The position numbers and the translations under genes were made by a program. From the sequence record NC_061451.1: a stretch of 64,000 nucleotides of DNA. One strand, given 5' to 3'. Below the pieces are notes generated by a model. The model was not told the DNA's origin. It worked only from the letters and a program-made list of their open reading frames with translations, and ran no database searches. Positions 1,540 to 15,538 of this stretch are shown piece by piece (within the stretch, counting starts at the first letter, position 1; each line of letters begins with the position of its first letter).

Positions 1540-3159
1540 TTACTCAGCCGGAGTGTAAGCGTTCGCACCAGTAACGAATGCGATTGCAACTTTCTTCTCG
1601 GTGGTCAGTTCAACACGCAGCGTGTTAGCGTCAACAAACACGACCTCATCAGGGATGATCTGATAGCCGGTATCATCAACGACGGTAACGGTACCGTATT
1701 TGACGCCTGCATTGTGTGCGAAGGTGTGAGTAGTGTTAGCCACGTCACCGCTTGCAGTTTTGTCGTACTGGTACAGCTTAGCAGCAGAACCGCTTGAGCC
1801 AGCAGCAATCGCATCGTCAACATATTTCTTGCTGACAACAGACTCATCAACCAGCGCTTCGGTGCCGGTCAGAGTAAGGGCTTCGACAGCGCCGCCTTCA
1901 CCAGCGATGAAACCAGCGCTTTTTAAGGCGTCTTGGTCCACGATGATTTTGCTGTTGGTAGTGTCCTGTTTCAGGCCAGTACCCAGAGCAGCGCCTGCAA
2001 TCTGCGCATAACCAACGCCACCATCAGTGATTGCCAGACCATCAGCAGTACGTGACAGAGTAGCGCCGTCCAGTTTAACGCGAGTAGCACCAGCGTTATC
2101 TTCCAGGCCACCAGCAGCGTCCAGCTTAGCAGTAACAGCGTTGCTAGTGATTTCGATACCAGCGCCAGTAACCACGTTAACGACGTTCGAAACTTTCTCC
2201 AAACCATTGCCTGGGTTGAAGTCAGAAGCGCCGCCGAAGGTAGTCCACTGAGTAGCGTCGAAGCGACGGTATTCTTTGATGCTCTTAACCCACGTTACAG
2301 CGCCACCAGCTTCGCTATCAGCAGGGTTGAAGACAACAACGAACGCAGTGCCATTGTAACGCACGATAGCGTTATCAACCAGGCCGCTGATAGTACCGAA
2401 GTTCGGGTTAACAGTGTCTGCATCGAGGATGATGTACTGCTTGCCGTTTTCCAGCACAGGGTCAAGGGTGCCGTCAGTCTGAATGTCATCAGAATCGTGC
2501 AGCCAATCGATACCAGCGATAGCGTTGTCAATGTCGATCTTACGAGCGGCATCGTTCGCGTTTGCAGGCGCGGCCAGGTTGGTGATGGTGTTACCGTCAG
2601 CGTTCAGGTCACCAGTCAGAACACCAGCGCCTGCGTCCAGCTTACCTGCCAGAGCAGTTTCGTTGGCGTCAGATTTGTTCTTGACTGCGGTGATCTGAGT
2701 CTGGATAGAAGAGGTAGCACCCTTCAAATAACCCAGTTCAGTTGCAGTAACATCGCTGGTTTCCAGAGTGCTGTCAGCGCCTGCAAACACAACGGCGTTT
2801 TCAGTCAGGCCAGACAGTTTATCCTGCTTGCCGCTGATAACTGTTTCAACGTGCTTCTTACTGACAGCAGCGTTATCTTCTGACGCGCTCTGGTCTGGAC
2901 CAGACAGCAGCAGATCGGCAGTCATGGCTACGGTACCGTCAGCGAGGATAACACCCTCTACAGAACCACCGCCTTCACCCAGCTCTTTGATTGCCGTACC
3001 GTCGAAGTATTTATACTTCTTGTCTGTGGTGTTATACCACATGCGCCCTTCCTGTGCGGCAACCAAGTCACCTACAGCAGGGTCAGCGGCAAGTTGTTCC
3101 GGGCGGAAGTTCTTGAGCTGGGCACCTAACATCAGTTCAATATTACCAGTACGCATCAT
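1540..3159 (-). CDS. Tail fibre/whisker-like structural protein
   Basis: 539 aa, Ala/Gly/Asp-rich fibre-type repeats (ANANDAARKIDID, GLEK...VVTGAGIEIT), coiled-coil segment, C-terminal HTFAHNAG domain. Confidence 0.7.
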   Translation of the reverse strand: MMRTGNIELMLGAQLKNFRPEQLAADPAVGDLVAAQEGRMWYNTTDKKYKYFDGTAIKELGEGGGSVEGVILADGTVAMTADLLLSGPDQSASEDNAAVSKKHVETVISGKQDKLSGLTENAVVFAGADSTLETSDVTATELGYLKGATSSIQTQITAVKNKSDANETALAGKLDAGAGVLTGDLNADGNTITNLAAPANANDAARKIDIDNAIAGIDWLHDSDDIQTDGTLDPVLENGKQYIILDADTVNPNFGTISGLVDNAIVRYNGTAFVVVFNPADSEAGGAVTWVKSIKEYRRFDATQWTTFGGASDFNPGNGLEKVSNVVNVVTGAGIEITSNAVTAKLDAAGGLEDNAGATRVKLDGATLSRTADGLAITDGGVGYAQIAGAALGTGLKQDTTNSKIIVDQDALKSAGFIAGEGGAVEALTLTGTEALVDESVVSKKYVDDAIAAGSSGSAAKLYQYDKTASGDVANTTHTFAHNAGVKYGTVTVVDDTGYQIIPDEVVFVDANTLRVELTTEKKVAIAFVTGANAYTPAE

Positions 3160-3180
3160 GTTCTCCTAGTGCGTGGGGGA

Positions 3181-3924
3181 TTAGAAAAACTGACCGTCAC
3201 ATTCACCAAGACTGCAACGCAGTTCCTGGTATGCAGCGATCCGTTGTTCAATTACATTAATAAACTTGTCATCAATATCATACTTCACACGAAGCGGAGC
3301 ATCATATCCTTCTAAGAGGCCGTGACGTCGATACGCATCTGCACGGAGCAGCGGTGCGCTAACGTGAGCACGTTCCATAATGCTTAAATCTATCTTATCG
3401 GCATAGATGAACGGCCGCTCTCGTTTACACAGAAGGTAATCGATCTCGTGTAAATTAAAGAGTGTGAAATTCATATAGCCAATAATGAACTCCGCAATCA
3501 AACGAAAACTATCTGCCATATCTGCACTCAGATTGTGAGCGAGTATGGGTTCTATGTGTGGTTGCAGTTCAGTACGCATGTCGTACCAAGCTTCACACAG
3601 AACAGCAGGGAAGTCTTCAGGGTGAGCGGCCATAAGACCCATCACCCCTTTCTCCATATCTGCGAATGAGCTTAAAAGATTAGCGGTATCTTCAGGTGTT
3701 TCAATACCGCGACCCGTTGAAATGAACTGGCATTCAATTTCTCTCAACCAAGACTCGGACGCAGATAGGTATTGGAGAAGTGTCTCCCGCGCGCCAGCCG
3801 AAAACTCATGTCGGTCAGACTCAAGAGCCTGGTCCAACAAGAAGGCTTTAGCTTTGTAGAAGTCACTATAGCGTTCAGCGGTAAAGCGGCGGAACGCTAT
3901 ATTATTTCTCAAATAGCCTATCAT
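3181..3924 (-). CDS. Hypothetical alpha-helical soluble protein
   Basis: 247-aa ORF coupled to the upstream gene by an ATGA overlap; no motif recognised. Confidence 0.6.
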   Translation of the reverse strand: MIGYLRNNIAFRRFTAERYSDFYKAKAFLLDQALESDRHEFSAGARETLLQYLSASESWLREIECQFISTGRGIETPEDTANLLSSFADMEKGVMGLMAAHPEDFPAVLCEAWYDMRTELQPHIEPILAHNLSADMADSFRLIAEFIIGYMNFTLFNLHEIDYLLCKRERPFIYADKIDLSIMERAHVSAPLLRADAYRRHGLLEGYDAPLRVKYDIDDKFINVIEQRIAAYQELRCSLGECDGQFF

Positions 3925-4424
3925 CGCAATTTCCTCAGATCATTCGACTCCGAAGCGCCTAAGCCGGGCGGAGCCGTATACAACGAACTGGAGAGGCTCT
4001 GCAATCTTAGCCCTAGCTTCTCTAGCTCATGTTGATTACCATCAAGACGGCCTAACACTTCACGCATTAGGTCAACTGACTCCTGATGGTCACGGGACTG
4101 CTGTGATATAATCCGCTCAAACCGCTGAACTGCTCGAAGAACTGAGTTCAATCCCTCTTTAAGATCTATATTGTCGACCTGCGTGGTTTCCGAAAACTCA
4201 TTAAGGGCTTTGAGGACCTGCGCTAGTTCTGCTTCTAGTGACTCACCATCGAGCACTACGGGATTTGCTTCTAACTCGGCTAACTTCTCTTTGACCCGTT
4301 CATAGTCCTGCATGTCGGGAATGACTTTCCACCAGTAAAAGCCAGCTCCTGCAATGAGAAGAACTACTGACAGGACAGTTGCGAAGTTGGACGCAAGCAC
4401 TTGTCCTAGTATTTCAGCCCACAT
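3921..4424 (-). CDS. Membrane-anchored coiled-coil protein
   Basis: N-terminal hydrophobic helix (FATVLSVVLLIAGAGFYWW) followed by a heptad-rich region. Confidence 0.65.
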   Translation of the reverse strand: MWAEILGQVLASNFATVLSVVLLIAGAGFYWWKVIPDMQDYERVKEKLAELEANPVVLDGESLEAELAQVLKALNEFSETTQVDNIDLKEGLNSVLRAVQRFERIISQQSRDHQESVDLMREVLGRLDGNQHELEKLGLRLQSLSSSLYTAPPGLGASESNDLRKLR

Positions 4425-4429
4425 TTCTT

Positions 4430-4714
4430 CTAACCCTTACAGGCTCGGTCATTGAGTTCGATAATAACTCGCTGTGCGCCTGGTTCGTTTACATCAGTGG
4501 TTTTATACGTGTGCGCCATCTTTGGCTTGAACTCTAAGCAGCTCTGTCCATATCGTCCGTCAACGACGCAGATAGCAGACAGGCAGCTCACATCTTCCTT
4601 GAGGATTCTCGATTCAGGATCTGGGTTGACACTTCTAACGGCCGTGACAATAAGCGACACAAAGGCCAAGGCAATGCCAACCAAAATCACAATCTTGATT
4701 TTCCCGGCGTTCAT
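4430..4714 (-). CDS. Small single-pass membrane protein with Cys-containing C-terminal domain
   Basis: KIKIVILVGIALAFVSLIVTAV transmembrane segment, then CLSAIC...C and a further Cys; candidate late promoter 31 nt upstream. Confidence 0.65.
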   Translation of the reverse strand: MNAGKIKIVILVGIALAFVSLIVTAVRSVNPDPESRILKEDVSCLSAICVVDGRYGQSCLEFKPKMAHTYKTTDVNEPGAQRVIIELNDRACKG

Positions 4715-4745
4715 TTCGCTCTATCCAGTTGAATTTTGATAGGAG

Positions 4746-4753
4746 AAATTAGC
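4746..4753 (-). promoter_or_regulatory. Candidate late promoter GCTAATTT
   Basis: Exact motif 31 nt upstream of the 4714 start; recurs upstream of other structural genes. Confidence 0.55.
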
Positions 4754-4775
4754 GACCGCGCAGATCCTAAACGGG

Positions 4776-5813
4776 TTATTCATCCAATACTCCACTTATA
4801 TCTTGGAACATGTTTTTATACACGAGGCTACCTCCAAGTTTGTCCAGTCGTTCAATCGAAACATACATGTGCGGTTCTGTATTCACCTGTGCCCACTTGT
4901 TGTCTGTACTCAGGTTTTCCAAAGAAGGAATAAGAACGATGCTCAAGTTATCAGAAGCCCTAACGAAAGCCACATCGATATGATTCTTATTGATTCGAAT
5001 GATGTATCGGTTGATTGCGTCCAAACCAACCGTGCGATTGAACTCTACATCACTGACTGTATTCACCAAACTAATAAGGAAGCCTTTCGAGCGACTGTTT
5101 ATGTCGAACAGCGAACTCTTCAACTCAGAGAGGGTAGTAGCCGAGAAGTGTTGAACATCATGGCCCTTGCCTCTTAGACACTCACCCAAGATGCGACTCG
5201 ATTCAATGTGCGCGGTGTTGTCATCACGCATGATATAAATCGGTGCACCTCTGTTGTATGTGCGCTCGGTAATCTGCTGTATCAGGTCGCATGTAGGCTC
5301 CGTAACAGTAGACAGGCCTTTATACGCAATAACAAACTTGTCCTTGTACAGGTCGTAAATCTCAGGCGGCATGTACTTCATGTAATCATCATCAAGGCTC
5401 AAAATCAATCGAGGCTTAACGAGAGGAATCACAAGCTGCACAGACCGCAGAGCGTCCTTGTACTCCGTGTCCGATAGCACACGGTTTATAGGTAGGTACT
5501 GCACAGTCACATACGGGTCAGAGCCTGTATCGACGATAGAGCGAACGGCTGTGCTGCCTACATTAGGACCTGCGGAGAACTGAGTGATAATCATCAAACT
5601 GTTTTGGCCTAAGCCACCGCCACCAGCAACTGTAGTAGCACTACCATCTGCATTCTGGACTGTCTTAGAGCGCGTCAGCGTTGGCGCTACTCGGTCGTCT
5701 CGTCCGTTATCGGCATATACATTAACTGCGCAACACCAGAGACAGCTTCCAAGAACGTAAGCAGCAATACGTTGTCGGGATCTGCGTCTGCCGGGTTGAC
5801 GGTGTCCGGCCAT
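4776..5813 (-). CDS. Putative exported (periplasmic) protein, possibly alpha/beta binding-protein-like fold
   Basis: AAGGAG RBS 7 nt before the ATG at 5813; signal-peptide-like N-terminus (RRRSRQR-IAAYVLGSCLWCCAV-NVYA/D); alternating strand/helix pattern; fold call is tentative. Confidence 0.55.
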   Translation of the reverse strand: MAGHRQPGRRRSRQRIAAYVLGSCLWCCAVNVYADNGRDDRVAPTLTRSKTVQNADGSATTVAGGGGLGQNSLMIITQFSAGPNVGSTAVRSIVDTGSDPYVTVQYLPINRVLSDTEYKDALRSVQLVIPLVKPRLILSLDDDYMKYMPPEIYDLYKDKFVIAYKGLSTVTEPTCDLIQQITERTYNRGAPIYIMRDDNTAHIESSRILGECLRGKGHDVQHFSATTLSELKSSLFDINSRSKGFLISLVNTVSDVEFNRTVGLDAINRYIIRINKNHIDVAFVRASDNLSIVLIPSLENLSTDNKWAQVNTEPHMYVSIERLDKLGGSLVYKNMFQDISGVLDE

Positions 5814-6511
5814 AATACTTCTCCTTTCTCGTCAGTGACATAAGGAATACCGGCGCCTTTACCCAATCCATGACGTAAGGCCCATACGGTGTCGGCATTC
5901 TCTTGAACGAACACAAGACCATGCACCTGTGCTTTATCCCCTGTCTGCTCAAGCGCTGTCACACGACTATCGAGTAACTGCGTTTGCGATTGGAGAGCAC
6001 GAATCGATGCAAGGTTGGAGTTAACACGCGTGTTCATATTGTTGAACATGGTGAAGAAGCTGTTGTTCATCGCAGTACGGACGCTGTCCGTGTACGACTT
6101 AGGAATCAGCTCATTGCTGTCAAACGTTGTTGCGCCCGGTCGAACGAATACCTTACCTTGAAGTGTACCGCCGCTCGCACTGATAATCTGAGGTGCAGGC
6201 AGATCAGCTGCATCCCAAGTCTGAACAGTGTTCATCACAGTAGCGTAGTCCGTTTCCTCCTGCCACGTATTCTTGTACGGGCTGGTGGCTGTTTTAGACT
6301 TGCGGCGTAACACTTTCTTGTAGCTGGCGTTGGCACCATCAGCAATGATCCAGAGACCGTTCAGAGGGAATGTATGCGTAACAGGTTCAGCAAACGCCAG
6401 TATGATAATGACGTCCGCTCCTACCTTATACACAATATCATTCGACGCCGAAAGTCCCTGCTGTTGCGCAAGGCTTACGAGCGTGTCCACATAGTTAGTC
6501 AACTGGCTCAT
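5687..6511 (-). CDS. Virion protein with coiled coil and C-terminal 'WALRHGLG' beta-domain
   Basis: 274 aa; NMNTRVNSNLASIRALQSQTQLLDSRVTALE coiled coil; C-terminal domain paralogous to 637..858. Confidence 0.7.
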   Translation of the reverse strand: MSQLTNYVDTLVSLAQQQGLSASNDIVYKVGADVIIILAFAEPVTHTFPLNGLWIIADGANASYKKVLRRKSKTATSPYKNTWQEETDYATVMNTVQTWDAADLPAPQIISASGGTLQGKVFVRPGATTFDSNELIPKSYTDSVRTAMNNSFFTMFNNMNTRVNSNLASIRALQSQTQLLDSRVTALEQTGDKAQVHGLVFVQENADTVWALRHGLGKGAGIPYVTDEKGEVLWPDTVNPADADPDNVLLLTFLEAVSGVAQLMYMPITDETTE

Positions 6512-6971
6512 CCGAAACTCCTAAGGTTTTTAGAATTGAAGAACTTCTATCGGAGAAGGCTTTTGCAATTGACAGAGCAGCAGCCTTATCGATAACGATT
6601 GTGCTGATAACGCCTTTGGTGTTGCATACGATTGTTTGAGGAGCGTAGTCAACACAAGCTAAGGCGAATAGCAGATGATTACCGAGTTCACCGCTGATAC
6701 AAACGTCTACGTCGAGGTCAGGCACGTAAACGTTCTGGTTAATCTCAGAAATAAACTGCGCCAGCGCAACGGGATCAAACTTAGGAGGCGCTGTATCGTA
6801 TTCCGCAATCAAGTCAATCTGTTTGGTTGCGGGATCGTATTCAAATGCGTTAATGTCCGAGATGATACGACCAAAGAGTTCGTTGCTTACTTCAATGCAA
6901 TACTCATCAGACTTCTCACGGACGCGACCAACTACCTTGTTAGTCGCTGGGTTGATACGAATGATTGGCAT
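6495..6971 (-). CDS. Hypothetical protein, possible fibre assembly chaperone
   Basis: 158-aa ORF directly downstream of a collagen fibre gene; function inferred from position only. Confidence 0.5.
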   Translation of the reverse strand: MPIIRINPATNKVVGRVREKSDEYCIEVSNELFGRIISDINAFEYDPATKQIDLIAEYDTAPPKFDPVALAQFISEINQNVYVPDLDVDVCISGELGNHLLFALACVDYAPQTIVCNTKGVISTIVIDKAAALSIAKAFSDRSSSILKTLGVSDEPVD

Positions 6972-6973
6972 AA

Positions 6974-7795
6974 TTAGTCGCCCTCTGCACTATACCAGAA
7001 GTCCCAGCCGACAACGTTTGTGCCAGTAGACTTAATGGTGAAGCCACCCAACAGGGCGTTCTCGTTCATCGCACTTGTACCATCCAGATTATATAGCTGG
7101 AAGGTCCGAGATTGATTGGTTGCAGTATTGACGAACGTGATTTGCACAGACACACAGCGGTTGATGAACGGGCTGTTGAAGATAACGTTAATCGTATCAG
7201 TAGTGGATGTATTCACCACACGACCAAAGTTCTTCGTGTAACCAGTGTTCAGATCGCGGTCGCTACCAATCCATGCGTTAGGAATAGGCTGACCTGTGAT
7301 AGGGTCAAGCGCTTGTGCTACGAGATACTCATTGATAGCAGCATCACGTCCTGCATTACCAGTAGGACCAGTTGGGCCTGTAGGACCCACACCACCTGTG
7401 TTACCTGTAGCGCCGACAGGCCCTGTGTTACCAGTAGGACCTTGACGGCCACGCTGACCACGAGGGCCAGGACAACCGTCTTCACCATCAGCACCATCAC
7501 GACCATCAGCACCAGGCAGGCCACGTAGACCGTCTTTACCCTGCTTACCTTCCTTGCCTGACTTCAACTGGTCAGCAGTAGGCAGGCCAGGCACTGTGCT
7601 CTGACTACCGTCTGGCCATACAATAGTAAGCGTACCACTCACTGGGTCGAACTGTACGCCTTGTGATCCCGGAATGTTAGCTGCCTCTGTCGGGTCAATA
7701 AACGCAACAGAGTTCAGCGTTTGTTTGCCGAGAACTTTACCGACAGGAAATGCACCGCCATCGATTAGTCCCGGACTTATTTTCTGCAAAGACAT
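6974..7795 (-). CDS. Collagen-like fibre protein
   Basis: Gly-X-Y run (GKEGKQGKDG...GPTGPTGNAG) after an 'FDPVSGTLTIVWPDG...GLPT' domain; C-terminal beta domain. Confidence 0.85.
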   Translation of the reverse strand: MSLQKISPGLIDGGAFPVGKVLGKQTLNSVAFIDPTEAANIPGSQGVQFDPVSGTLTIVWPDGSQSTVPGLPTADQLKSGKEGKQGKDGLRGLPGADGRDGADGEDGCPGPRGQRGRQGPTGNTGPVGATGNTGGVGPTGPTGPTGNAGRDAAINEYLVAQALDPITGQPIPNAWIGSDRDLNTGYTKNFGRVVNTSTTDTINVIFNSPFINRCVSVQITFVNTATNQSRTFQLYNLDGTSAMNENALLGGFTIKSTGTNVVGWDFWYSAEGD

Positions 7796-7805
7796 GGGCT
7801 AGCTC

Positions 7806-8009
7806 CTAACCAGTCAGTGTTGTCCAATCAGGTTGGCCTGATTGACCCGCTTCGGGATTCTTAACTTTCGTGTTGTTGATTGTCATACGAATCCAACGCA
7901 CAGTACCGTCAGAATCCTGCCAGCGAATCTTCGTTCCACCGTATGCTAAATTAGCTACCCATCTGTCTCTGCTAGGGTCTTTGAAAGCAAGACGTGCATA
8001 AGCAGGCAT
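7806..8009 (-). CDS. Small fibre adaptor-like protein
   Basis: 67 aa, resembles the N-terminus of 10936..12957 (R.R/K.....W.....T.+.+...DG...W). Confidence 0.55.
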   Translation of the reverse strand: MPAYARLAFKDPSRDRWVANLAYGGTKIRWQDSDGTVRWIRMTINNTKVKNPEAGQSGQPDWTTLTG

Positions 8010-8018
8010 AAGTTCTCC

Positions 8019-10892
8019 TTAGATTTCGTCAGGTTCCCAACACAGAATAGGACGGCGATACACTTGGAATACGCCAGTAGGCGCGTAGCTTGAGCTAAGG
8101 TATTCTTTAGCGTTCGTACTGAGGCTACGTTCTGACGTAAGCAACTGTTGCCTGTTGTGCGTCCACTGACAACGACCACAAGACTCTGCTTCGATACCCG
8201 CATCTGAATCCCAACCAGGCACGTCGAATGTTTTGTTCCATCCGTTGAAGTGGTGAGTAGACACCGCTCCGTTGCCTGTTGCACACAGCACCATGTACTG
8301 GTAGTCAGACTCGAAGTAGATAGGTACGTTACGGCCTGTAGGGATAGAAGGACCGTTAGCGTTATACGTCAACTGCCAACCAGTACGGTCTGCTGAGCCT
8401 GTAGACATGAACAACGGTCTACGGATAATCATCATGATACCGTTCTGCGTTCCGTTGTCGCTAGTCTTAGTGCAGTACGCATTACAGCGTAGCGCACGGT
8501 CAACAGTGAACAACGTACTGTTGGAGAAGTCAGCATTGTACAGGTTAGCAGCCCACTGAGGTAAGTTAGCAGCTTCTGGTACAATGAAGTGGCGCTCTGC
8601 CAGTTCCAGATCACCGTAGCGGTCATAAGCAAACACGATATACTCATAGCCTGCATCGATCTGAATGTTGTGACCTTGAGAACCCACACCAGTCCACTTC
8701 CAAACAATCTGCCAGTCGTTAGTATCACGTCCAGGCGTATCGTTTATCAGGCCGTACTTGCGTTCGTATATCTGCCATACTCGGGAGCCACCAGTTGCAG
8801 CAAAGTACAAGCTGCCTGGATTAGAGCGGTCACCACCACAACGAGTAAGATGGTCAGGGCCTGCTTCGTTGTAAGCACTGGCTCCGCCTACACCGTCAAA
8901 CATTTCCCAGTTCATCATCAAGTGAGAGGTGCACAACTCATTTGGTCCGCTATCATCCGTTGTCGTAACAAGATATTCGTACTGGTCAGCAAACGGATAG
9001 TAGACAGTCTCTGTTCCTGCCATAGCAACACGACGAACCCAATCGTGTGACTGCACTTTAGGTACAGGGAAGCAAGGGTTAGTCACAGACACGACGAAAC
9101 TTTTAGTCTCGTACATCGGCAGCTTTTTGAAGCGGTTATCACGAATCGTCACCGTGTGCTTCATGCCGTAAGTCTGTGCACCGTCCATACCGCCTAGCAC
9201 TTTGTAGTAGCTGAGATGCGCACTCTTGGTGCTCTCATACAGACCAGTGATACCTAAAGACATTGCGCTGTTGCGGTCAGTACCACAGCAATACTGATTG
9301 CCGTAGCTGTCATACGCGAAGCCCACAGAGAAGTAGCTATCAGGGTCAGACGACTGAGGTCCGTAGTACATCTCAGTAGGCGCATTGCCCTCACCAACAC
9401 CAGGCAGGCCAAAGCAGCAATAGCAACCGCGATACTGATACTGTCCGCCTTCGTACACGCGACGAGAAGCACCGATGCGATACATAGCACCAGCAAGCCC
9501 GCCTTGAGTACGGTTAACGTTCGCCGTGTCATAGGAAACGACATAGACAAAGTGGTCGGCGCCAATCGAGTTCAGGAACGCAGCCATATTAGCAGCATTC
9601 GTCGTGCCTGGCGCAGTACCTTCGGCAGAAACGTGAATGTCATACGCTCTGCGATCTACGAGCACTTGGTCGGACTTGCGAATCTTGTACACGTTGAAGC
9701 CGCGAGAATCTCGGTAGTACACGCCATTCACATACGTGTAACCAACATCGCCTGTGTCAAGCGTGCGCTGATAACCTACGATGTGGCTGAACACGCTACT
9801 ACGCGCTTGCAGACTCGCACCGTTATCGTTCGACCAGTTGACAGATACATCACCCGCAGCCATACGCGCAGCCCAATCATCAGGCTTGTATGGGTAAGTG
9901 GTCACGTCAAAGTTAACGCCATACGCACTGCCTATTTCTACGCAGCACGGGTCACGATAGATGATCTCTGGGTCAAGAATAACATCGTCAGGAATATCGA
10001 CTTGACCACAGTACATCTGACGCCACACACCAGCTTGACCGCCGATAGAACCCGGGCCAGCAGCACCTGCTCCAGAGTTAAACTGGTAAGCAGCAGACGC
10101 ACGATAGTTCTTTTGGTTGCTTAACTGTGGAACGTTCAGCCAGCCTACGTGGTCACCAAAAGCATTGATGGACTTAGAACGCGCAGCCTGAGTAGCTACA
10201 ACGTTAGCAGCACCATTGCTTGTGATACCAAGCGGACTAAAGATAGCGTTGAAGTTAACGTTACCCTCGTACGGTCCTTTCTGGAGTACAATCAGGCTAA
10301 CGCCGTTACGATGCGCTTCACGCAAGGCATTGAGCATTGCAGTAGGCATCGACTGTCCGCTAGAAGATAGCAGCAGCATAACGCAGGACCATTGCTGGAA
10401 ATACTTATAGGTTCCGTCGTAACCGTAAGCACCAGCATTGATTTCATCCCACGTATGAGACAGCATGTCCAGAGGCATACGCTCAAGATAATGAACAAGC
10501 TGTCCCCATGACTCCATTGCAGACTCATCATCCACAGAAGCACCATCACTAATGACCAGCATCGTCGAGCCAGCAGTGATGTTAGAGTTATAGGCACGCT
10601 CGGTCAGGAACTGGCGCAGCGCACCCATGTTGTTAATTGTGGTATTGCGATAGTTACCCATCCAGCCGTAGCCGTCAGTAACCATTGGACTATCACTGCG
10701 AATGAAGCTACCGTTCATATACACAGAACCGTAACCGCAAACATACGCGAGAGCATGACCATCAACAACAAAGGATGTGTAGCGATTGCTATCAACGCCC
10801 ATCGCATCAACAGCAGCTACGGAGCCATCACCTACACCGCCAGTAAAGACAGGAGTAATGCCTCGTGCATACAAGCAACTTTGTTGCAGCAT
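8019..10892 (-). CDS. Large fibre/receptor-binding protein with an ILEI/GG-type (T4 gp35-like) domain and three C-terminal repeats
   Basis: RGFNVYKI...RAYD...MAAFLNSI...VVSYD...RIGAS...YRGCYCCFG resembles the ILEI domain; three 'W.........Y.Y.V' repeats at the C-terminus. Confidence 0.7.
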   Translation of the reverse strand: MLQQSCLYARGITPVFTGGVGDGSVAAVDAMGVDSNRYTSFVVDGHALAYVCGYGSVYMNGSFIRSDSPMVTDGYGWMGNYRNTTINNMGALRQFLTERAYNSNITAGSTMLVISDGASVDDESAMESWGQLVHYLERMPLDMLSHTWDEINAGAYGYDGTYKYFQQWSCVMLLLSSSGQSMPTAMLNALREAHRNGVSLIVLQKGPYEGNVNFNAIFSPLGITSNGAANVVATQAARSKSINAFGDHVGWLNVPQLSNQKNYRASAAYQFNSGAGAAGPGSIGGQAGVWRQMYCGQVDIPDDVILDPEIIYRDPCCVEIGSAYGVNFDVTTYPYKPDDWAARMAAGDVSVNWSNDNGASLQARSSVFSHIVGYQRTLDTGDVGYTYVNGVYYRDSRGFNVYKIRKSDQVLVDRRAYDIHVSAEGTAPGTTNAANMAAFLNSIGADHFVYVVSYDTANVNRTQGGLAGAMYRIGASRRVYEGGQYQYRGCYCCFGLPGVGEGNAPTEMYYGPQSSDPDSYFSVGFAYDSYGNQYCCGTDRNSAMSLGITGLYESTKSAHLSYYKVLGGMDGAQTYGMKHTVTIRDNRFKKLPMYETKSFVVSVTNPCFPVPKVQSHDWVRRVAMAGTETVYYPFADQYEYLVTTTDDSGPNELCTSHLMMNWEMFDGVGGASAYNEAGPDHLTRCGGDRSNPGSLYFAATGGSRVWQIYERKYGLINDTPGRDTNDWQIVWKWTGVGSQGHNIQIDAGYEYIVFAYDRYGDLELAERHFIVPEAANLPQWAANLYNADFSNSTLFTVDRALRCNAYCTKTSDNGTQNGIMMIIRRPLFMSTGSADRTGWQLTYNANGPSIPTGRNVPIYFESDYQYMVLCATGNGAVSTHHFNGWNKTFDVPGWDSDAGIEAESCGRCQWTHNRQQLLTSERSLSTNAKEYLSSSYAPTGVFQVYRRPILCWEPDEI

Positions 10893-10935: not shown

Positions 10936-12957
10936 TTAGCCAAATACAATCTCAGTGATTGCAAGATACGTCACATCGTTTGAGTCACCACGGTCACCAG
11001 AACCGTAGGCCATCAACCAAATCTCTTCACCTGCAGGGATGTTAGTGTCGAATGTGATACGTTGCAGAACGTTAGCGCTTGAGTAAACACGCTGCGCTGC
11101 ACCAGCACCCGCATAACGTTCGTAGATGGACATGTCGTGCCAGCTACCGTTATTGCCATCAAACACCCAATCAAATGTGATTCGCTTGATAGGTCGAGTG
11201 AAGAAGTTATTCCACTTGAACCAACCATTCGAGCCACCCCAGAAGTTCATATAGCTGCCGTCCCAAACCTTCAGGTTCTCAATGCCGCCACTGACTGTAC
11301 GACCGCCAGTCTGTGTGAATGCATAGCAGTACCATGGGAATGGATCTGAATCAGGTGGCTGTGAGTTACCACCAGCAACTGTGATGCAGCGATACGGAAC
11401 TGTGAAGTCTCTGACGTTAATGTGCGGAGGCTGAATCGGACAGTACACATAGTAAGACCAGTCACACCCAATAGGGCCTGTAACGCGCACTGTGATTTCA
11501 GAACGCAGGACATGCTCAGGGTATTTCCAGAACTCAAGTGTACCGACAGCGCCTGCTACGACAATCGACGTATCAAGCAGATTCATATCACGGTCAAACA
11601 CCTCGAACTTGGTATCGAATGAGTTAGCAACGCATACGACCAGCTCTGCTCGGATATCTGTCTGTGTGCCTAACGCAAAATTATCTTCTGTGGTTGGATG
11701 ACCGGCAGAGTAAACGCTGTAGCTTTGGCACGGATGCATGAACTCACGCGCACCACGCTCCGAAGGACAATAAAGGCTGTAGAAGAAGCTGTCGAGTGAC
11801 TCAGCATTTCCAAAGTCTTTAGATACCACGCGCACCATAATGTCACACGCGATGTTCTTAGGGTCAAAGTAGAAATACAGATAACCCTCAAGTGTCTTCG
11901 CATCAAGCGTTGTTGCAATACGTCTACCGTTTTGATACACCTCAATGAAGTCGAGCGTTTCCCAAGAGGTGTAATCAAGGTACATCCAGCCTGCTGTCCA
12001 GCCAACAAAGTGATAATACTCGAACGCGTTAGCATTCTGAATACGCTCTGCAATAGGCCACACTGAGGCATGACACGGAGCTGGGAAGACTGGCGTGCCG
12101 ATATAGTCAGGATTGATAACGTCAGGATAGTTGATAACGTCATACGCAGCTTGACTATCAAGCGCTAACCCACCACGGTCAGAAGGCGCAGAAAGCAGAG
12201 GAGGATAAACCATCATGCTCCAGCCGTAACCTTGAGTTGTGCGCACACGTATCATGATACGCATATCGGCAGCGTCAGGGTCAAACTGGAACTTGATGCG
12301 AGAACGTCCTGTTACTTTGCCGCAAGATGAAGCTACGCGCACGCCCATGTGATAGACGTCAATGCTCGCACCAGCTGGCGCATACGAAGCAAAGTTAACC
12401 TCGACGTAACCTTCAGTTGCAGGCAGCGCATAGATCGTTTCAGTGATAACAGCACCACGACCGTGAGTAGATGCGTAAGGCACGTTGGGGTTAGCATACG
12501 TGCCCAGACCTGCTCTCGATGCTACGCCGACAGGGTCATAAGACTCAAGCGTCTTGATGCCTGGGCGATTGATACTGCGACCAGTTGGAGGTGCTGACGA
12601 GTTGACGACACCGAAGCCTGTACGACCCGCATCAGGCAAGTCGAAGCCTATTGGATAGCCCCCAAGAATCGTGTAGCTCTCACGACCACCACTGCCTATA
12701 CCGTTACCGGAGCCTTTGGTTGTTGACGTAGGGCCGCCGCCACATGCACCTGTTTCAAGATTCGAACAGGGATCATCATACGTAGGGTCAAACGTGTCAT
12801 CGATTAAATGCCAGCGCTTGCCCCACTGATTACGCACGCTGAACTTCTCAGGTGTTAGAGGAGTCCAGTCACCTTCCTTGGTGCGAACGTACATGGGCGT
12901 ATCGACACAATCAAGCCAACCGTTATTCGCAGCATTACGAACGCGAAAACGTGACAT
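10936..12957 (-). CDS. Fibre-tip/receptor-binding protein with three tandem beta-sandwich repeats
   Basis: Three ~90-aa repeats ending in W/F-x-x-x-x-Y-C/P-P (…GWSMMVYPP, …FFYSLYCP, …DWSYYVYCP). Confidence 0.7.
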   Translation of the reverse strand: MSRFRVRNAANNGWLDCVDTPMYVRTKEGDWTPLTPEKFSVRNQWGKRWHLIDDTFDPTYDDPCSNLETGACGGGPTSTTKGSGNGIGSGGRESYTILGGYPIGFDLPDAGRTGFGVVNSSAPPTGRSINRPGIKTLESYDPVGVASRAGLGTYANPNVPYASTHGRGAVITETIYALPATEGYVEVNFASYAPAGASIDVYHMGVRVASSCGKVTGRSRIKFQFDPDAADMRIMIRVRTTQGYGWSMMVYPPLLSAPSDRGGLALDSQAAYDVINYPDVINPDYIGTPVFPAPCHASVWPIAERIQNANAFEYYHFVGWTAGWMYLDYTSWETLDFIEVYQNGRRIATTLDAKTLEGYLYFYFDPKNIACDIMVRVVSKDFGNAESLDSFFYSLYCPSERGAREFMHPCQSYSVYSAGHPTTEDNFALGTQTDIRAELVVCVANSFDTKFEVFDRDMNLLDTSIVVAGAVGTLEFWKYPEHVLRSEITVRVTGPIGCDWSYYVYCPIQPPHINVRDFTVPYRCITVAGGNSQPPDSDPFPWYCYAFTQTGGRTVSGGIENLKVWDGSYMNFWGGSNGWFKWNNFFTRPIKRITFDWVFDGNNGSWHDMSIYERYAGAGAAQRVYSSANVLQRITFDTNIPAGEEIWLMAYGSGDRGDSNDVTYLAITEIVFG

Positions 12958-12968
12958 GTACTATCTCC

Positions 12969-13460
12969 TTACGGTCTGACCCAGATAGCGCCTGCTGGAA
13001 CTTCTTGATCTTGAGCGGGGTCCGTATCTTGTACGAAGACAGCTACCACACCTGGGTTTCCAGGAGCACCAGTCGGGCCTGTAGCGCCAGTAGGACCTGC
13101 TGGACCACGAATACCCACATAGCCTTGCTTGCCTGGCAGACCATCGATACCACGAGGACCAACACAGCCGTCAGTACCGCGTTTACCGTCAGAACCCATC
13201 AGGCCGTCGATACCATCACGACCAGAAGCACCAACGCCACCTTCAGGACCGTAGCCGATGCTGTAGATGGTAGGTAGGCCAGAGATAGCGAGCTTTCCGA
13301 TACTCGGAATATTGATAGACAGCACACCTGTAAGTTGATCGAAGGCGCCTTGTAGCGTTGTTTCGTCTTCGGCAACATCAACAGACACACCGCCTTGAGT
13401 TGCTACTACCTTACCAGACGCATTCGTCTTGAGTAGCGATATATCAACCTTTTCTACCAC
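12969..13460 (-). CDS. Short collagen-like fibre protein
   Basis: FDQLTGVLSI...GLPT domain, Gly-X-Y run containing DGCVGP, ends GAIWVRP. Confidence 0.85.
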   Translation of the reverse strand: MVEKVDISLLKTNASGKVVATQGGVSVDVAEDETTLQGAFDQLTGVLSINIPSIGKLAISGLPTIYSIGYGPEGGVGASGRDGIDGLMGSDGKRGTDGCVGPRGIDGLPGKQGYVGIRGPAGPTGATGPTGAPGNPGVVAVFVQDTDPAQDQEVPAGAIWVRP

Positions 13461-13469
13461 GAGAACTCC

Positions 13470-14102
13470 TTATGGCCATGTGGTGCCTTGATCTTTAGTA
13501 GGGTCCACCCACAGCGTCCCGGCAGCTACTGCTCCAGGCTGAGTGGCGCTAACGATAATTGCAAGACGACCGGAAGGACCTGCAGGACCAGTTGGGCCAG
13601 TAGGACCAGTACCACCAGTAGAGCCAGTAGGACCAGTACCACCGCGAGGACCAGTAGGTCCAGTCGGCCCCATAGGTCCTTCACGACCTTCTCTGCCCGT
13701 AGGGCCAACATTACCGTCACGGCCATCACGACCATCCGGGCCTGGTATGCCTTGCTCGCCATCTGGACCAACAGGGCCTGTACAGCCTGGACCGCCCGTT
13801 GCACCATCACGACCATCACGACCATCTTTTCCGTCTGCACCTGTTTCACCTTTCTGACCTGTACGACCCGCTGGAATATCAGACGCAGTTGGGAAACCTG
13901 AGACTTTGAGACTACTGCCGTTAGCAAAGCGCAGAGTTAACACGCCCGCAGTAGCGTCATACGAGGAATCTGACGTGACCTCTGATGGAGCTTCGGACTC
14001 AGCGCTGTTAACGACAAGTGTGCCGCCAGATGCTCGGACAGGTGTTGCAACAGAACTTATGCCCGCAGCGATTAAACTTGTTTTTACCTTTATCAAACTC
14101 AT
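13470..14102 (-). CDS. Collagen-like fibre protein
   Basis: [15 protein letters not shown]...GFPT domain, long Gly-X-Y run containing PGCTGP, ends GTLWVDP. Confidence 0.85.
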
Positions 14103-15538
14103 TACGTCTTCTCCGCCTGAGCAGTCATATCCGTGTTATGAGCCAGAACATCACCAACGAAATAGCAGTCGAAAGGTTCAACGTCTATGTCTACGGTATT
14201 AACGAGTTGGTCTATACGACGACATTCGTATACAGACACAGGACCTTTACGTCCTCTGACTTGCATTCCTTGCTTAACTTCACGAGCAGGAACATAGCGC
14301 CATTGCTTATCATCGTAGATCAGCACAGGATGTTCGTGCGTAAACTTCTGTCCGTTAATGACGAAGTAGTGATCTTCCTGACCGTACTTGAGTGCTCGAA
14401 CAGCAGCATAGACATTCTTACCTTTCAGGCTCGGCGAGGACCATTTACGGAACTCTTTAGGCTGATTGGAGAACGCAGCAAGCATATCGCCTACAGACAA
14501 ACGCTCAACAGGCACAGAGCCTGCGATTGTATGCACGGTAGAGCCGAACACGATACAACCAGATGTTTTACTCACAGGGTTACGTGCAACTACAGTCAGA
14601 GCAGACTTCACAGTGACTGTAGGACGAGATGGTTGCCCCATGTCTGTTACTAAACAACTGATGGTGCCTTTGATTGTACGATCAGCACCGAGACCAAGAC
14701 GCAGATAGAAGTTAACTATGCAAGTGTTAGTCTCTATGGCGTCAAGATTAACGCCCTCAGTTGTTGTGATTGTCCACTTGTACTTGTATGGACCCACACC
14801 GCCACGCGCATTGACAGGCAGATAAGCAAGCGAGGTAAATACGTCAGACCCTTGTACTGTGCGCGTGCCTACCATGTACAGACTAGACACAGAAGCAACA
14901 AGTGGGCTGATAGTAGGAAGAGGAGGTGCTGGCGATACGTTAGCAGTCGGGTACAGCCACACGAACACGTTAGATGCAGTGGGCTGCACATTAGATAGCA
15001 CAGCAGTTTCGATAGGCGCAGGACCCGTAGGACCCGTTGCGCCCGCGATACAGCTTGGACCGTCATTACCTCGTGGGCCGAGTATGCCAGTAGGACCTGT
15101 TGGACCGATAGGACCTGTTGGACCGTCTTTGCCATCAGGACCCGTGTCACCATCAGGGCCAGTAGCACCATCACGGCCAGGCTCACCCGCAGTACCGTTC
15201 AGACCTCTAGCACCCGGGAGACCACCACAACCGTCAGCGCCAGTAGAGCCATCACGACCGTCACGGCCATCACGACCCGCAGCGCCTGGTGCACCTCTCT
15301 TACCTTGCTTACCTGAACCAAACATTGCACTCGTAGGCAGGCCGGGGATATTAACTAAATCCCCATTCTGTTTGATGAGTACGAGCACGCCGTTCTTACT
15401 GTCAAACTTTACGCTTGCGATCTGTGTCGTTGTCAACACATCGGAGGATTCGAATTGAATACCACCAGCAACAGCAACAACGGATTTACCTTCATCGTTG
15501 CCTGTTGTCTCGATTTGCGAAAGTTTTAAGTCTGTCAT
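14102..15538 (-). CDS. Collagen-like fibre protein with a C-terminal Hint (intein-like) domain
   Basis: [10 protein letters not shown]...GLPT domain, Gly-X-Y run, Ig-like middle domain, then C...THEH...[12 protein letters not shown]. Confidence 0.85.
14135..14557 (-). other. Hint / mini-intein-like domain (141 aa)
   Basis: Block A Cys (G|CIVFGSTV), block B TxxH (THEH), block [19 protein letters not shown] followed by Thr; no endonuclease insertion. Confidence 0.8.

Follow-up and report, generated by a model that had tools for sequence, protein, structure and literature searches.

A bacterial intein-like Hint domain at the extreme C terminus of a collagen-like phage tail fibre protein, a candidate self-removing pro-domain

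Why should a tail fibre protein of a bacteriophage end in a Hint domain that has almost nothing behind it? The case considered here is gp117, a collagen-like fibre protein encoded in a 64,000-nucleotide stretch of sequence record NC_061451.1 (the whole of this stretch is called the window below). The region is 100% identical to the Erwinia amylovora jumbo phages pEa_SNUABM_7 and pEa_SNUABM_14 (Snuvirus), which belong to the "hairy Myoviridae" group along with Y3, AD1, and Alexandra (PMC6143709). An earlier note, made from the letters of the window alone, had read positions 14102-14557 as an intact Hint domain with a 10-residue C-extein and no homing endonuclease at the end of a collagen fibre protein, and had proposed a role in fibre maturation through self-removal, splicing onto a short tip peptide, or covalent attachment. 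The placement was right in its particulars. The translation, a Pfam Collagen match, matches to bacterial intein-like (BIL) domains, AlphaFold2, and Foldseek bear out an intact Hint domain at the C terminus of a collagen-like fibre; the interval runs exactly from Cys328 through the stop codon, the C-extein does have 10 residues, and a domain of 141 residues leaves no room for an endonuclease. Sequence alone cannot decide between removal, splicing, and covalent attachment, but as we read the comparative data and the structural models, the domain is most probably a catalytically competent, A-type BIL or pretoxin-HINT-like pro-domain that removes itself from the C terminus of the fibre protein, a reading to which we assign a probability of roughly 0.6.

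The profile searches that had been suggested against Hint, PT-HINT, and intein models gave a divided answer. Pfam matched Hint_2 to the N-terminal third of the domain (E=3e-4) and PT-HINT to the whole of it (E=7.6e-3), both below the gathering score that serves as the curated cutoff, and no intein or Hint model in NCBIfam matched gp117 or the isolated domain at E<=10. Since the Pfam hits are subthreshold, membership in the family was established through relatives, a profile, and predicted structure. The best sequence match in the PDB is 2lwy, a BIL domain of Clostridium thermocellum (E=0.008), which aligns end to end with the gp117 domain, both closing on His-Asn. A search of 1.84 billion cluster representatives returned 270 relatives at E<=0.001, and a family profile built from 43 of them gave 3.8e-23 for 2lwy and about 1e-18 for Tetrahymena BIL2, with inteins of known function at 8.5e-12 or weaker. 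The same profile also matched residues 1071-1224 of a 1368-residue PDB entry (8w20/8w22, 6.5e-17), which is named "Intein C-terminal splicing domain-containing protein".

Predicted structure led to the same place. An AlphaFold2 model of the Hint domain, built with the alignment of its relatives, had a pLDDT of 92.8, and Foldseek matched it with probability 1.00 to more than 50 Hint structures of BIL, intein, and Hedgehog (Hog) type, with 2lwy at the top (TMt 0.80), Tetrahymena BIL2 second, and inteins and Hedgehog 1at0 (TMt 0.74) after them. Against predicted viral structures, the best matches were a tail protein of phage NCTB and uncultured Caudovirales proteins annotated as Hint, fn3, or PASTA (TMq 0.84-0.88). 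Model and profile together confirm residues 328-468 as a true Hint domain, more than a chance assignment, and by sequence as well as by predicted fold inteins and Hog lie further from it than BIL domains do.

The full catalytic set is present. In a close alignment of gp117 with 21 homologues (22 proteins, 45-100% identical over their full length and 57-99% over the Hint region), C328, T400, H403, D450, D452, H467, and N468 are all invariant. In a wide set of 141 well-covered Hint domains, which are representatives clustered at 50% identity, Cys1 is kept in 99 of the 100 relatives with that position aligned, the block-B Thr and His in 135 and 133 of 141, and the block-G His and terminal Asn in 136 and 137 of 141; Gly precedes Cys1 in 62 of 92 aligned relatives. 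Conservation of the catalytic residues, on which the original reading depended, thus extends from close to distant relatives. Codon comparisons of the Hint domain among six orthologues gave pN values of 0.17-0.31 with pS saturated, and a dN/dS of about 0.06-0.14 where it was calculable; the domain is under purifying selection equal in strength to that on the remaining protein.

The terminal position of the domain is also not peculiar to gp117. Among the 150 best representatives, 97 have their His-Asn no more than 15 residues from the end of the protein, with tails of 1-15 residues (median about 7, five of them a single residue) and at least one residue after His-Asn in all 97. When 83 of these 97 were scanned with Pfam (E<=0.001), 45 matched PT-HINT, 29 Intein_splicing, 15 Hint_2, and 12 Hint; in the close alignment, PT-HINT matched 12 of its 22 members at E<=0.01. 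The N-terminal partners in the scanned proteins vary, with Collagen in 16, Ig, fn3, PKD, and Calx-beta in 1-3 each, and a phage tail-collar domain in a few, and 77 of the 83 fall into the same PHROGs family as gp117. Two genomic settings were looked at, and both are tail modules: one syntenic with that of gp117 (relative P0031), the other a siphovirus-like tail-tip module in which the Hint gene follows an NlpC/P60 gene (P0048). The layout recurs across phage fibre, adhesin, and tail-tip proteins, in at least 97 clusters when these are formed at 50% identity. For a BIL-type Hint domain, the extreme C terminus of phage fibres is an unusual place, one that recurs and has yet to be characterised. 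The presence of the domain had been seen before, since the GenBank entries of Y3 and NCTB carry the remark "contains intein domain". Full-text literature searches on phage tail fibres with a Hint, intein, or BIL domain turned up no account of function or processing; the papers on the AD1/JA phages and on PaBG leave the domain unmentioned, and the inteins described in the phiCbK, CBB, and Staphylococcus phage literature are ordinary ones in terminase or enzymes.

Two further Hint-like genes were seen in phage NCTB (LT598654.1). Beside its fibre-Hint gene lies a stand-alone open reading frame of 153 residues (positions 4483-4944 of the locus examined) that ends in His-Asn plus 3 residues and has no TxxH, and at 6308-8477 of the same locus a Hint-like gene encodes a 1304-residue protein whose predicted structure matches the gp117 Hint domain (TMq 0.85). 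Separately, the records of Alcaligenes phage Afa-NA1 (PV550095.1) and Salmonella phage Sen-NF (PV359490.1), 78 and 108 kb long, gave the same tblastn figures for the fibre module (34.7% identity, E=9e-23). As these records are assigned to very different hosts, they may have a segment in common or may be incomplete or mixed assemblies.

If the fold is that of an intein, is gp117 simply an intein-containing protein? The residue that follows His-Asn speaks against it. H467-N468-T469 is present in gp117, and the +1 position is Thr in 21 and Ser in 1 of the 22 closely aligned proteins, yet it is Val in the orthologue of Yersinia phage fHe-Yen9-02, whose Hint domain is 54% identical, Ala in NCTB and two other relatives (P0022 and P0023), and Met in Afa-NA1 and P0024. 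Across the 97 relatives with a terminal Hint domain, +1 is most often Lys (20) or Ala (19), followed by Ser (11), Val (10), and Leu (9), with Thr in only 2, so that Ser or Thr accounts for 13 and no nucleophile stands at +1 in the other 84. In the suggested check on relatives, conservation of the +1 Thr thus fails outside the nearest clade, and since the nucleophile is clade specific, the conserved function must be something other than splicing onto a tip peptide. Nor does the gene look like a conserved host gene interrupted by an insertion that an intein-less allele would bridge, as the C-terminal flank is 10 residues long and the known Hint-less orthologue simply ends near the N-terminal junction. 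The variable +1 position and this orthologue together rule out a classical intein. What the domain does fit, judged by its residues, is the A-type BIL class, which has Cys1 and a conserved His-Asn without a conserved +1 nucleophile; the near absence of a C-extein, the missing endonuclease, and the variety of N-terminal partners agree with that definition, as does the location in variable surface or secreted-type proteins with collagen, Ig, fn3, PKD, Calx-beta, and tail-tip partners. BIL domains are reported to yield mainly N- and C-cleavage products (PMC7664689, PMC7765530).

The Hint-less orthologue comes from Dickeya phage JA11 (NC_048077.1). Its gp096, at positions 2979-3953 of the JA11 locus examined, is syntenic with gp117 and 49% identical to it over residues 4-321 by BLASTP, but it has 324 residues and no Hint domain. 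The protein stops one Lys past the match to residue 321, six residues before the Hint junction, and the next gene begins after 10 nucleotides, with no Hint remnant downstream. In the Salmondvirus lineage the domain was apparently either cleanly lost or never present, and the JA11 sequence suggests that it is dispensable in the mature fibre.

Taken with the catalytic conservation and the purifying selection, JA11 makes a maturation role the best reading of the locus, and of the routes proposed earlier it is self-removal that we favour. Cys328 would attack the G327-C328 bond, and an N-S acyl shift aided by T400 and H403 would give a thioester, which water or a cytoplasmic thiol would resolve in the reducing cytoplasm where virions assemble. 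The fibre thus released would end at Gly327, with a computed mass of 32.9 kDa, against 50.0 kDa for the unprocessed chain. Cyclisation of Asn468, aided by H467, would shed the 10-residue tail and leave a free Hint domain of 16.1 kDa (computed) that would form no part of the mature fibre. While still attached, the domain would probably aid folding or assembly or mask the distal beta-sandwich that precedes it. In the clade of gp117, some of the reaction might be led by the +1 Thr into true splicing instead. A positive role of some kind is indicated by the persistence of the domain: a useless C-terminal domain could be removed by one stop codon, yet this one is kept in distant phages and with many partners.

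Several points weigh against self-removal. Hint domains are monomeric, so it is hard to see how one would set the register of a trimer. Cleavage at the N-terminal junction alone would not need a near-universal His-Asn with a constant following residue, which hints that a C-terminal reaction or the tail itself matters, and the strict Thr or Ser at +1 in the close alignment, together with the conserved tail, would fit real splicing. Whatever benefit the domain brings must be conditional, since JA11 shows that a fibre can lose it, and no processing data for gp117 or related fibres were found in the literature.

Comparison with known systems places the gp117 domain among BIL domains in chemistry and apart from them in setting. 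A-type BIL domains (Amitai et al. 2003; 2lwy) have the same Cys1, block-B TxxH, and C-terminal His-Asn, lack a conserved +1 nucleophile and an endonuclease, and likewise occur in variable surface-type proteins. The gp117 family differs in residing in phage tail fibres at the extreme C terminus, with 1-15 residues after it rather than between two substantial protein parts, and in tails with a Lys near the end; gp117 itself has a +1 Thr. The PT-HINT domains of polymorphic toxins (PF07591) are described by a Pfam model that covers the whole gp117 domain, but at 16.9 bits against a gathering score of 27.7, and behind the gp117 domain there are 10 residues only, with no toxin or other domain, so that the product released would be the N-terminal part and not a C-terminal toxin. 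Hedgehog Hog (1at0) matches in structure and is also a C-terminal Hint domain that frees an N-terminal functional part through a thioester at a Gly/Cys junction; gp117 lacks the sterol-recognition region, has the terminal His-Asn that Hog does without, and is less similar to Hog in sequence than to BIL domains. Class-1 mini-inteins such as gp41-1 and Npu DnaB have in common with gp117 the fold and the four catalytic positions, but gp117 is not a conserved host protein, has no intein-less allele spanning both flanks, varies at +1 among its relatives, and matches mini-inteins less well than BIL domains.

A fibre end that removes itself has a precedent in the peptidase S74 C-terminal intramolecular chaperone of K1F endosialidase and T5 pb1, which is trimeric and works through a Ser-Lys dyad. 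The likeness we propose is one of function only, in that a C-terminal fibre domain would remove itself after assembly. The gp117 Hint domain is unrelated to S74 in sequence and fold, and Pfam gave no S74 match in gp117 at E<=1.

In gp117 the short tail carries the ribosome-binding site of the next gene, and the gp117 stop codon overlaps that gene's start as TAATG (within 14100-14114, minus strand). Synonymous divergence in the tail codons is low, with pS of 0.12-0.47 vs 0.54-0.81 in the other four regions for the same pairs, one distant pair being saturated in the tail too; this and the overlapping site mean that part of the tail conservation acts at the DNA level. The ending is also rich in Lys. 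Across the 97 terminal-Hint relatives, a Lys lies within the last four residues of 73, compared with 10 of 50 long open reading frames of the window (Fisher p=1.7e-10), and it occupies the last position in 25 of 97 and the one before it in 37 of 92; overall, Lys makes up 4.3% of the residues of these proteins. Among the 53 relatives whose Hint domain ends more than 15 residues from the C terminus, Lys does not rank in the top four residues at positions -1 to -4. The ribosome-binding site is ruled out as the full cause of the tail Lys, both by Afa-NA1, whose tail has Lys even though its Shine-Dalgarno sequence is placed beyond the stop codon, and by the enrichment across 97 independent clusters. 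A Lys-ended tail and a residue that is always present after His-Asn suggest some chemistry not yet understood.

A first rival to self-removal, which we think unlikely though worth keeping in mind, is true cis-splicing in the gp117 clade. Here the domain would act as a class-1 mini-intein, passing the thioester to Thr469, with Asn468 cyclising and residues 1-327 joined to the tail in a product of 33.9 kDa. All four class-1 elements (C1, TxxH, HN, and the +1 Thr) are in place in gp117, D470, E476, and K477 are invariant in the close alignment alongside the near-uniform Thr, and BIL domains that lack a +1 nucleophile are still able to join their flanks (Aranko et al. 2013, cited in PMC7664689). 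However, the same position is Val, Ala, or Met in orthologues, Ser and Thr are rare there in the wider family, five tails consist of a single residue, nothing in the JA11 protein corresponds to the tail except one Lys, and the conservation of the tail is partly that of the overlapping ribosome-binding site. A short tail could in any case be encoded directly, which would leave the retention of the domain unexplained.

A covalent ligation that ends in an isopeptide bond appears improbable. The G327 thioester would in this case be resolved by an amine, whether of the Lys at the end of the tail, of a Lys in another virion protein, or of the host surface. The precedent is Tetrahymena BIL2, which makes a bond between a Lys epsilon-NH2 and a C terminus with the Lys of its C-extein as the nucleophile (PMC8616854), and which resembles the gp117 family in its C-extein Lys as well as being the second-best structural and profile match (6y75/6tmm). 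The enrichment of Lys in the tails, the invariant K477, and the unfailing presence of a residue after His-Asn would all fit. Yet the flanks of BIL2 in its BUBL protein are ubiquitin-like domains and those of gp117 are a fibre and a 10-residue peptide, and an isopeptide in gp117 is only supposed. Ligation is otherwise purely inferential: a fibre end linked to its own tail has no obvious use, the fibre end that bears the domain is presumably the distal one, remote from other virion proteins, survival of a thioester during virion storage is improbable, the Lys codons partly overlap the ribosome-binding site in gp117, and JA11 does without the domain. We hold the corresponding general proposal, that terminal phage-fibre Hint domains are ligases and give an isopeptide-modified or covalently anchored fibre tip as in Tetrahymena BUBL BIL2, to be improbable as well. 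Were it true, it would mean a new posttranslational chemistry in virion assembly or adsorption and would explain why the tails are rich in Lys and why the His-Asn is conserved.

The remaining alternative, that the domain is never processed and stays as a distal knob, or is a neutral or selfish passenger kept active only because an uncleaved copy harms the fibre, is improbable: the database label "virion structural protein" is silent on processing, the JA11 fibre works without the domain, and mini-inteins without endonucleases do persist in phage genes, but a structural knob has no need of Cys1, TxxH, and HN, the catalytic residues are near-invariant in 141 diverged relatives with many N-terminal partners at a dN/dS of about 0.1, and a passenger that one stop codon at the junction would remove has been kept from Erwinia phages to NCTB and siphovirus-like tail-tip genes.

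Should self-removal prove correct, BIL-type Hint domains would be a second, independent solution to fibre maturation beside the unrelated self-cleaving chaperones of S74 type, and BIL domains, whose biological purpose is still unclear, would gain a concrete function. Mature fibres would also be about 17 kDa shorter than annotated, which bears on virion proteomes, cryo-electron microscopy maps, and the expression of fibres.

Table 1. Layout of gp117 and its two paralogues, with positions in the window
Feature	Position	Strand	Basis
Collagen-like fibre gene with C-terminal Hint domain, gp117 of pEa_SNUABM_7 (YP_010303258), 478 residues + stop	14102..15538	(-)	Open reading frame, translation, database record
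Residues 1-75, small N-terminal beta domain, common to the two downstream paralogues	15314..15538	(-)	Alignment; AlphaFold2 strands at residues 20-64
Residues 76-162, 29 G-X-Y triplets (collagen triple-helix repeat), invariant Cys104 at an X position	15053..15313	(-)	Pfam Collagen E=1e-13, translation, alignment
Residues 175-321, post-collagen segment and beta-sandwich, pLDDT about 90	14576..15016	(-)	AlphaFold2; BLASTP
Residues 322-327, six-residue linker VSKTSG, ending in Gly-1; predicted cleavage site G327/C328	14558..14575	(-)	Translation, alignment
Residues 328-468, 141-residue BIL-type Hint domain: Cys1 C328, block B T400/H403, block F D450/D452, block G H467-N468	14135..14557	(-)	Sequence, profile, AlphaFold2, Foldseek
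Residues 469-478, 10-residue tail, T469 at +1; D470, E476, K477 invariant in 22 close relatives	14105..14134	(-)	Translation, alignment
GGAG ribosome-binding site within tail codons 475-476, 8 nucleotides upstream of the next gene's ATG	14111..14114	(-)	Sequence
Paralogous collagen-like fibre protein, 210 residues, no beta-sandwich, no Hint domain	13470..14102	(-)	Open reading frame, Pfam, alignment
Second paralogous collagen-like fibre protein, 163 residues, no beta-sandwich, no Hint domain	12969..13460	(-)	Open reading frame, Pfam, alignment

Within the gene (Table 1), the G327-C328 junction lies at the C328 codon, positions 14555-14557; THEH spans residues 400-403, the N468 codon is at 14135-14137, and the stop codon is at 14102-14104. 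The N-terminal domain is presumed to be the virion-attachment end. The beta-sandwich was given no named fold, as Foldseek with the full-length model returned Hint matches only. In PHROGs, gp117 matches phrog_38766 end to end.

The gene belongs to a module of tail and baseplate genes. On its upstream side are a PAAR protein, hypothetical proteins of 139 and 487 residues, a 1508-residue tail protein, and a 779-residue protein; downstream are two short collagen-like proteins labelled "tail fiber" and then two large unknown proteins. With gp117, these short proteins make three successive collagen-like paralogue genes at 12969-15538 (minus strand), encoding chains of 478, 210, and 163 residues. The chains agree in their N-terminal domain, in an invariant Cys that occupies one and the same G-X-Y position (C104 in gp117), and in a W-x-x-P motif behind the collagen stretch. 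The beta-sandwich and Hint domain occur only on the first of the three. The paralogues might form a heterotrimer, or they might be three kinds of fibre ("hairs").

Pfam and family hidden Markov model (HMM) scans of the 64-kb window found a single Hint domain, that of gp117. The 673-residue gp114 (10936-12957, minus strand), which is 56% identical over 395 residues to an Afa-NA1 "putative large intein domain protein", was considered as a second carrier and rejected, having no Hint domain by Pfam or by the family HMMs; the annotation of its Afa-NA1 relative therefore looks like a misnomer. Weak internal repeats are visible in the gp114 alignment. The downstream end of the fibre module is occupied by a free-standing HNH endonuclease gene, gp109 (about 5687-6511, minus strand, by RefSeq annotation), which is separate from the Hint domain; in phage Yoloswag, too, an HNH endonuclease follows directly on the collagen-like fibre genes.

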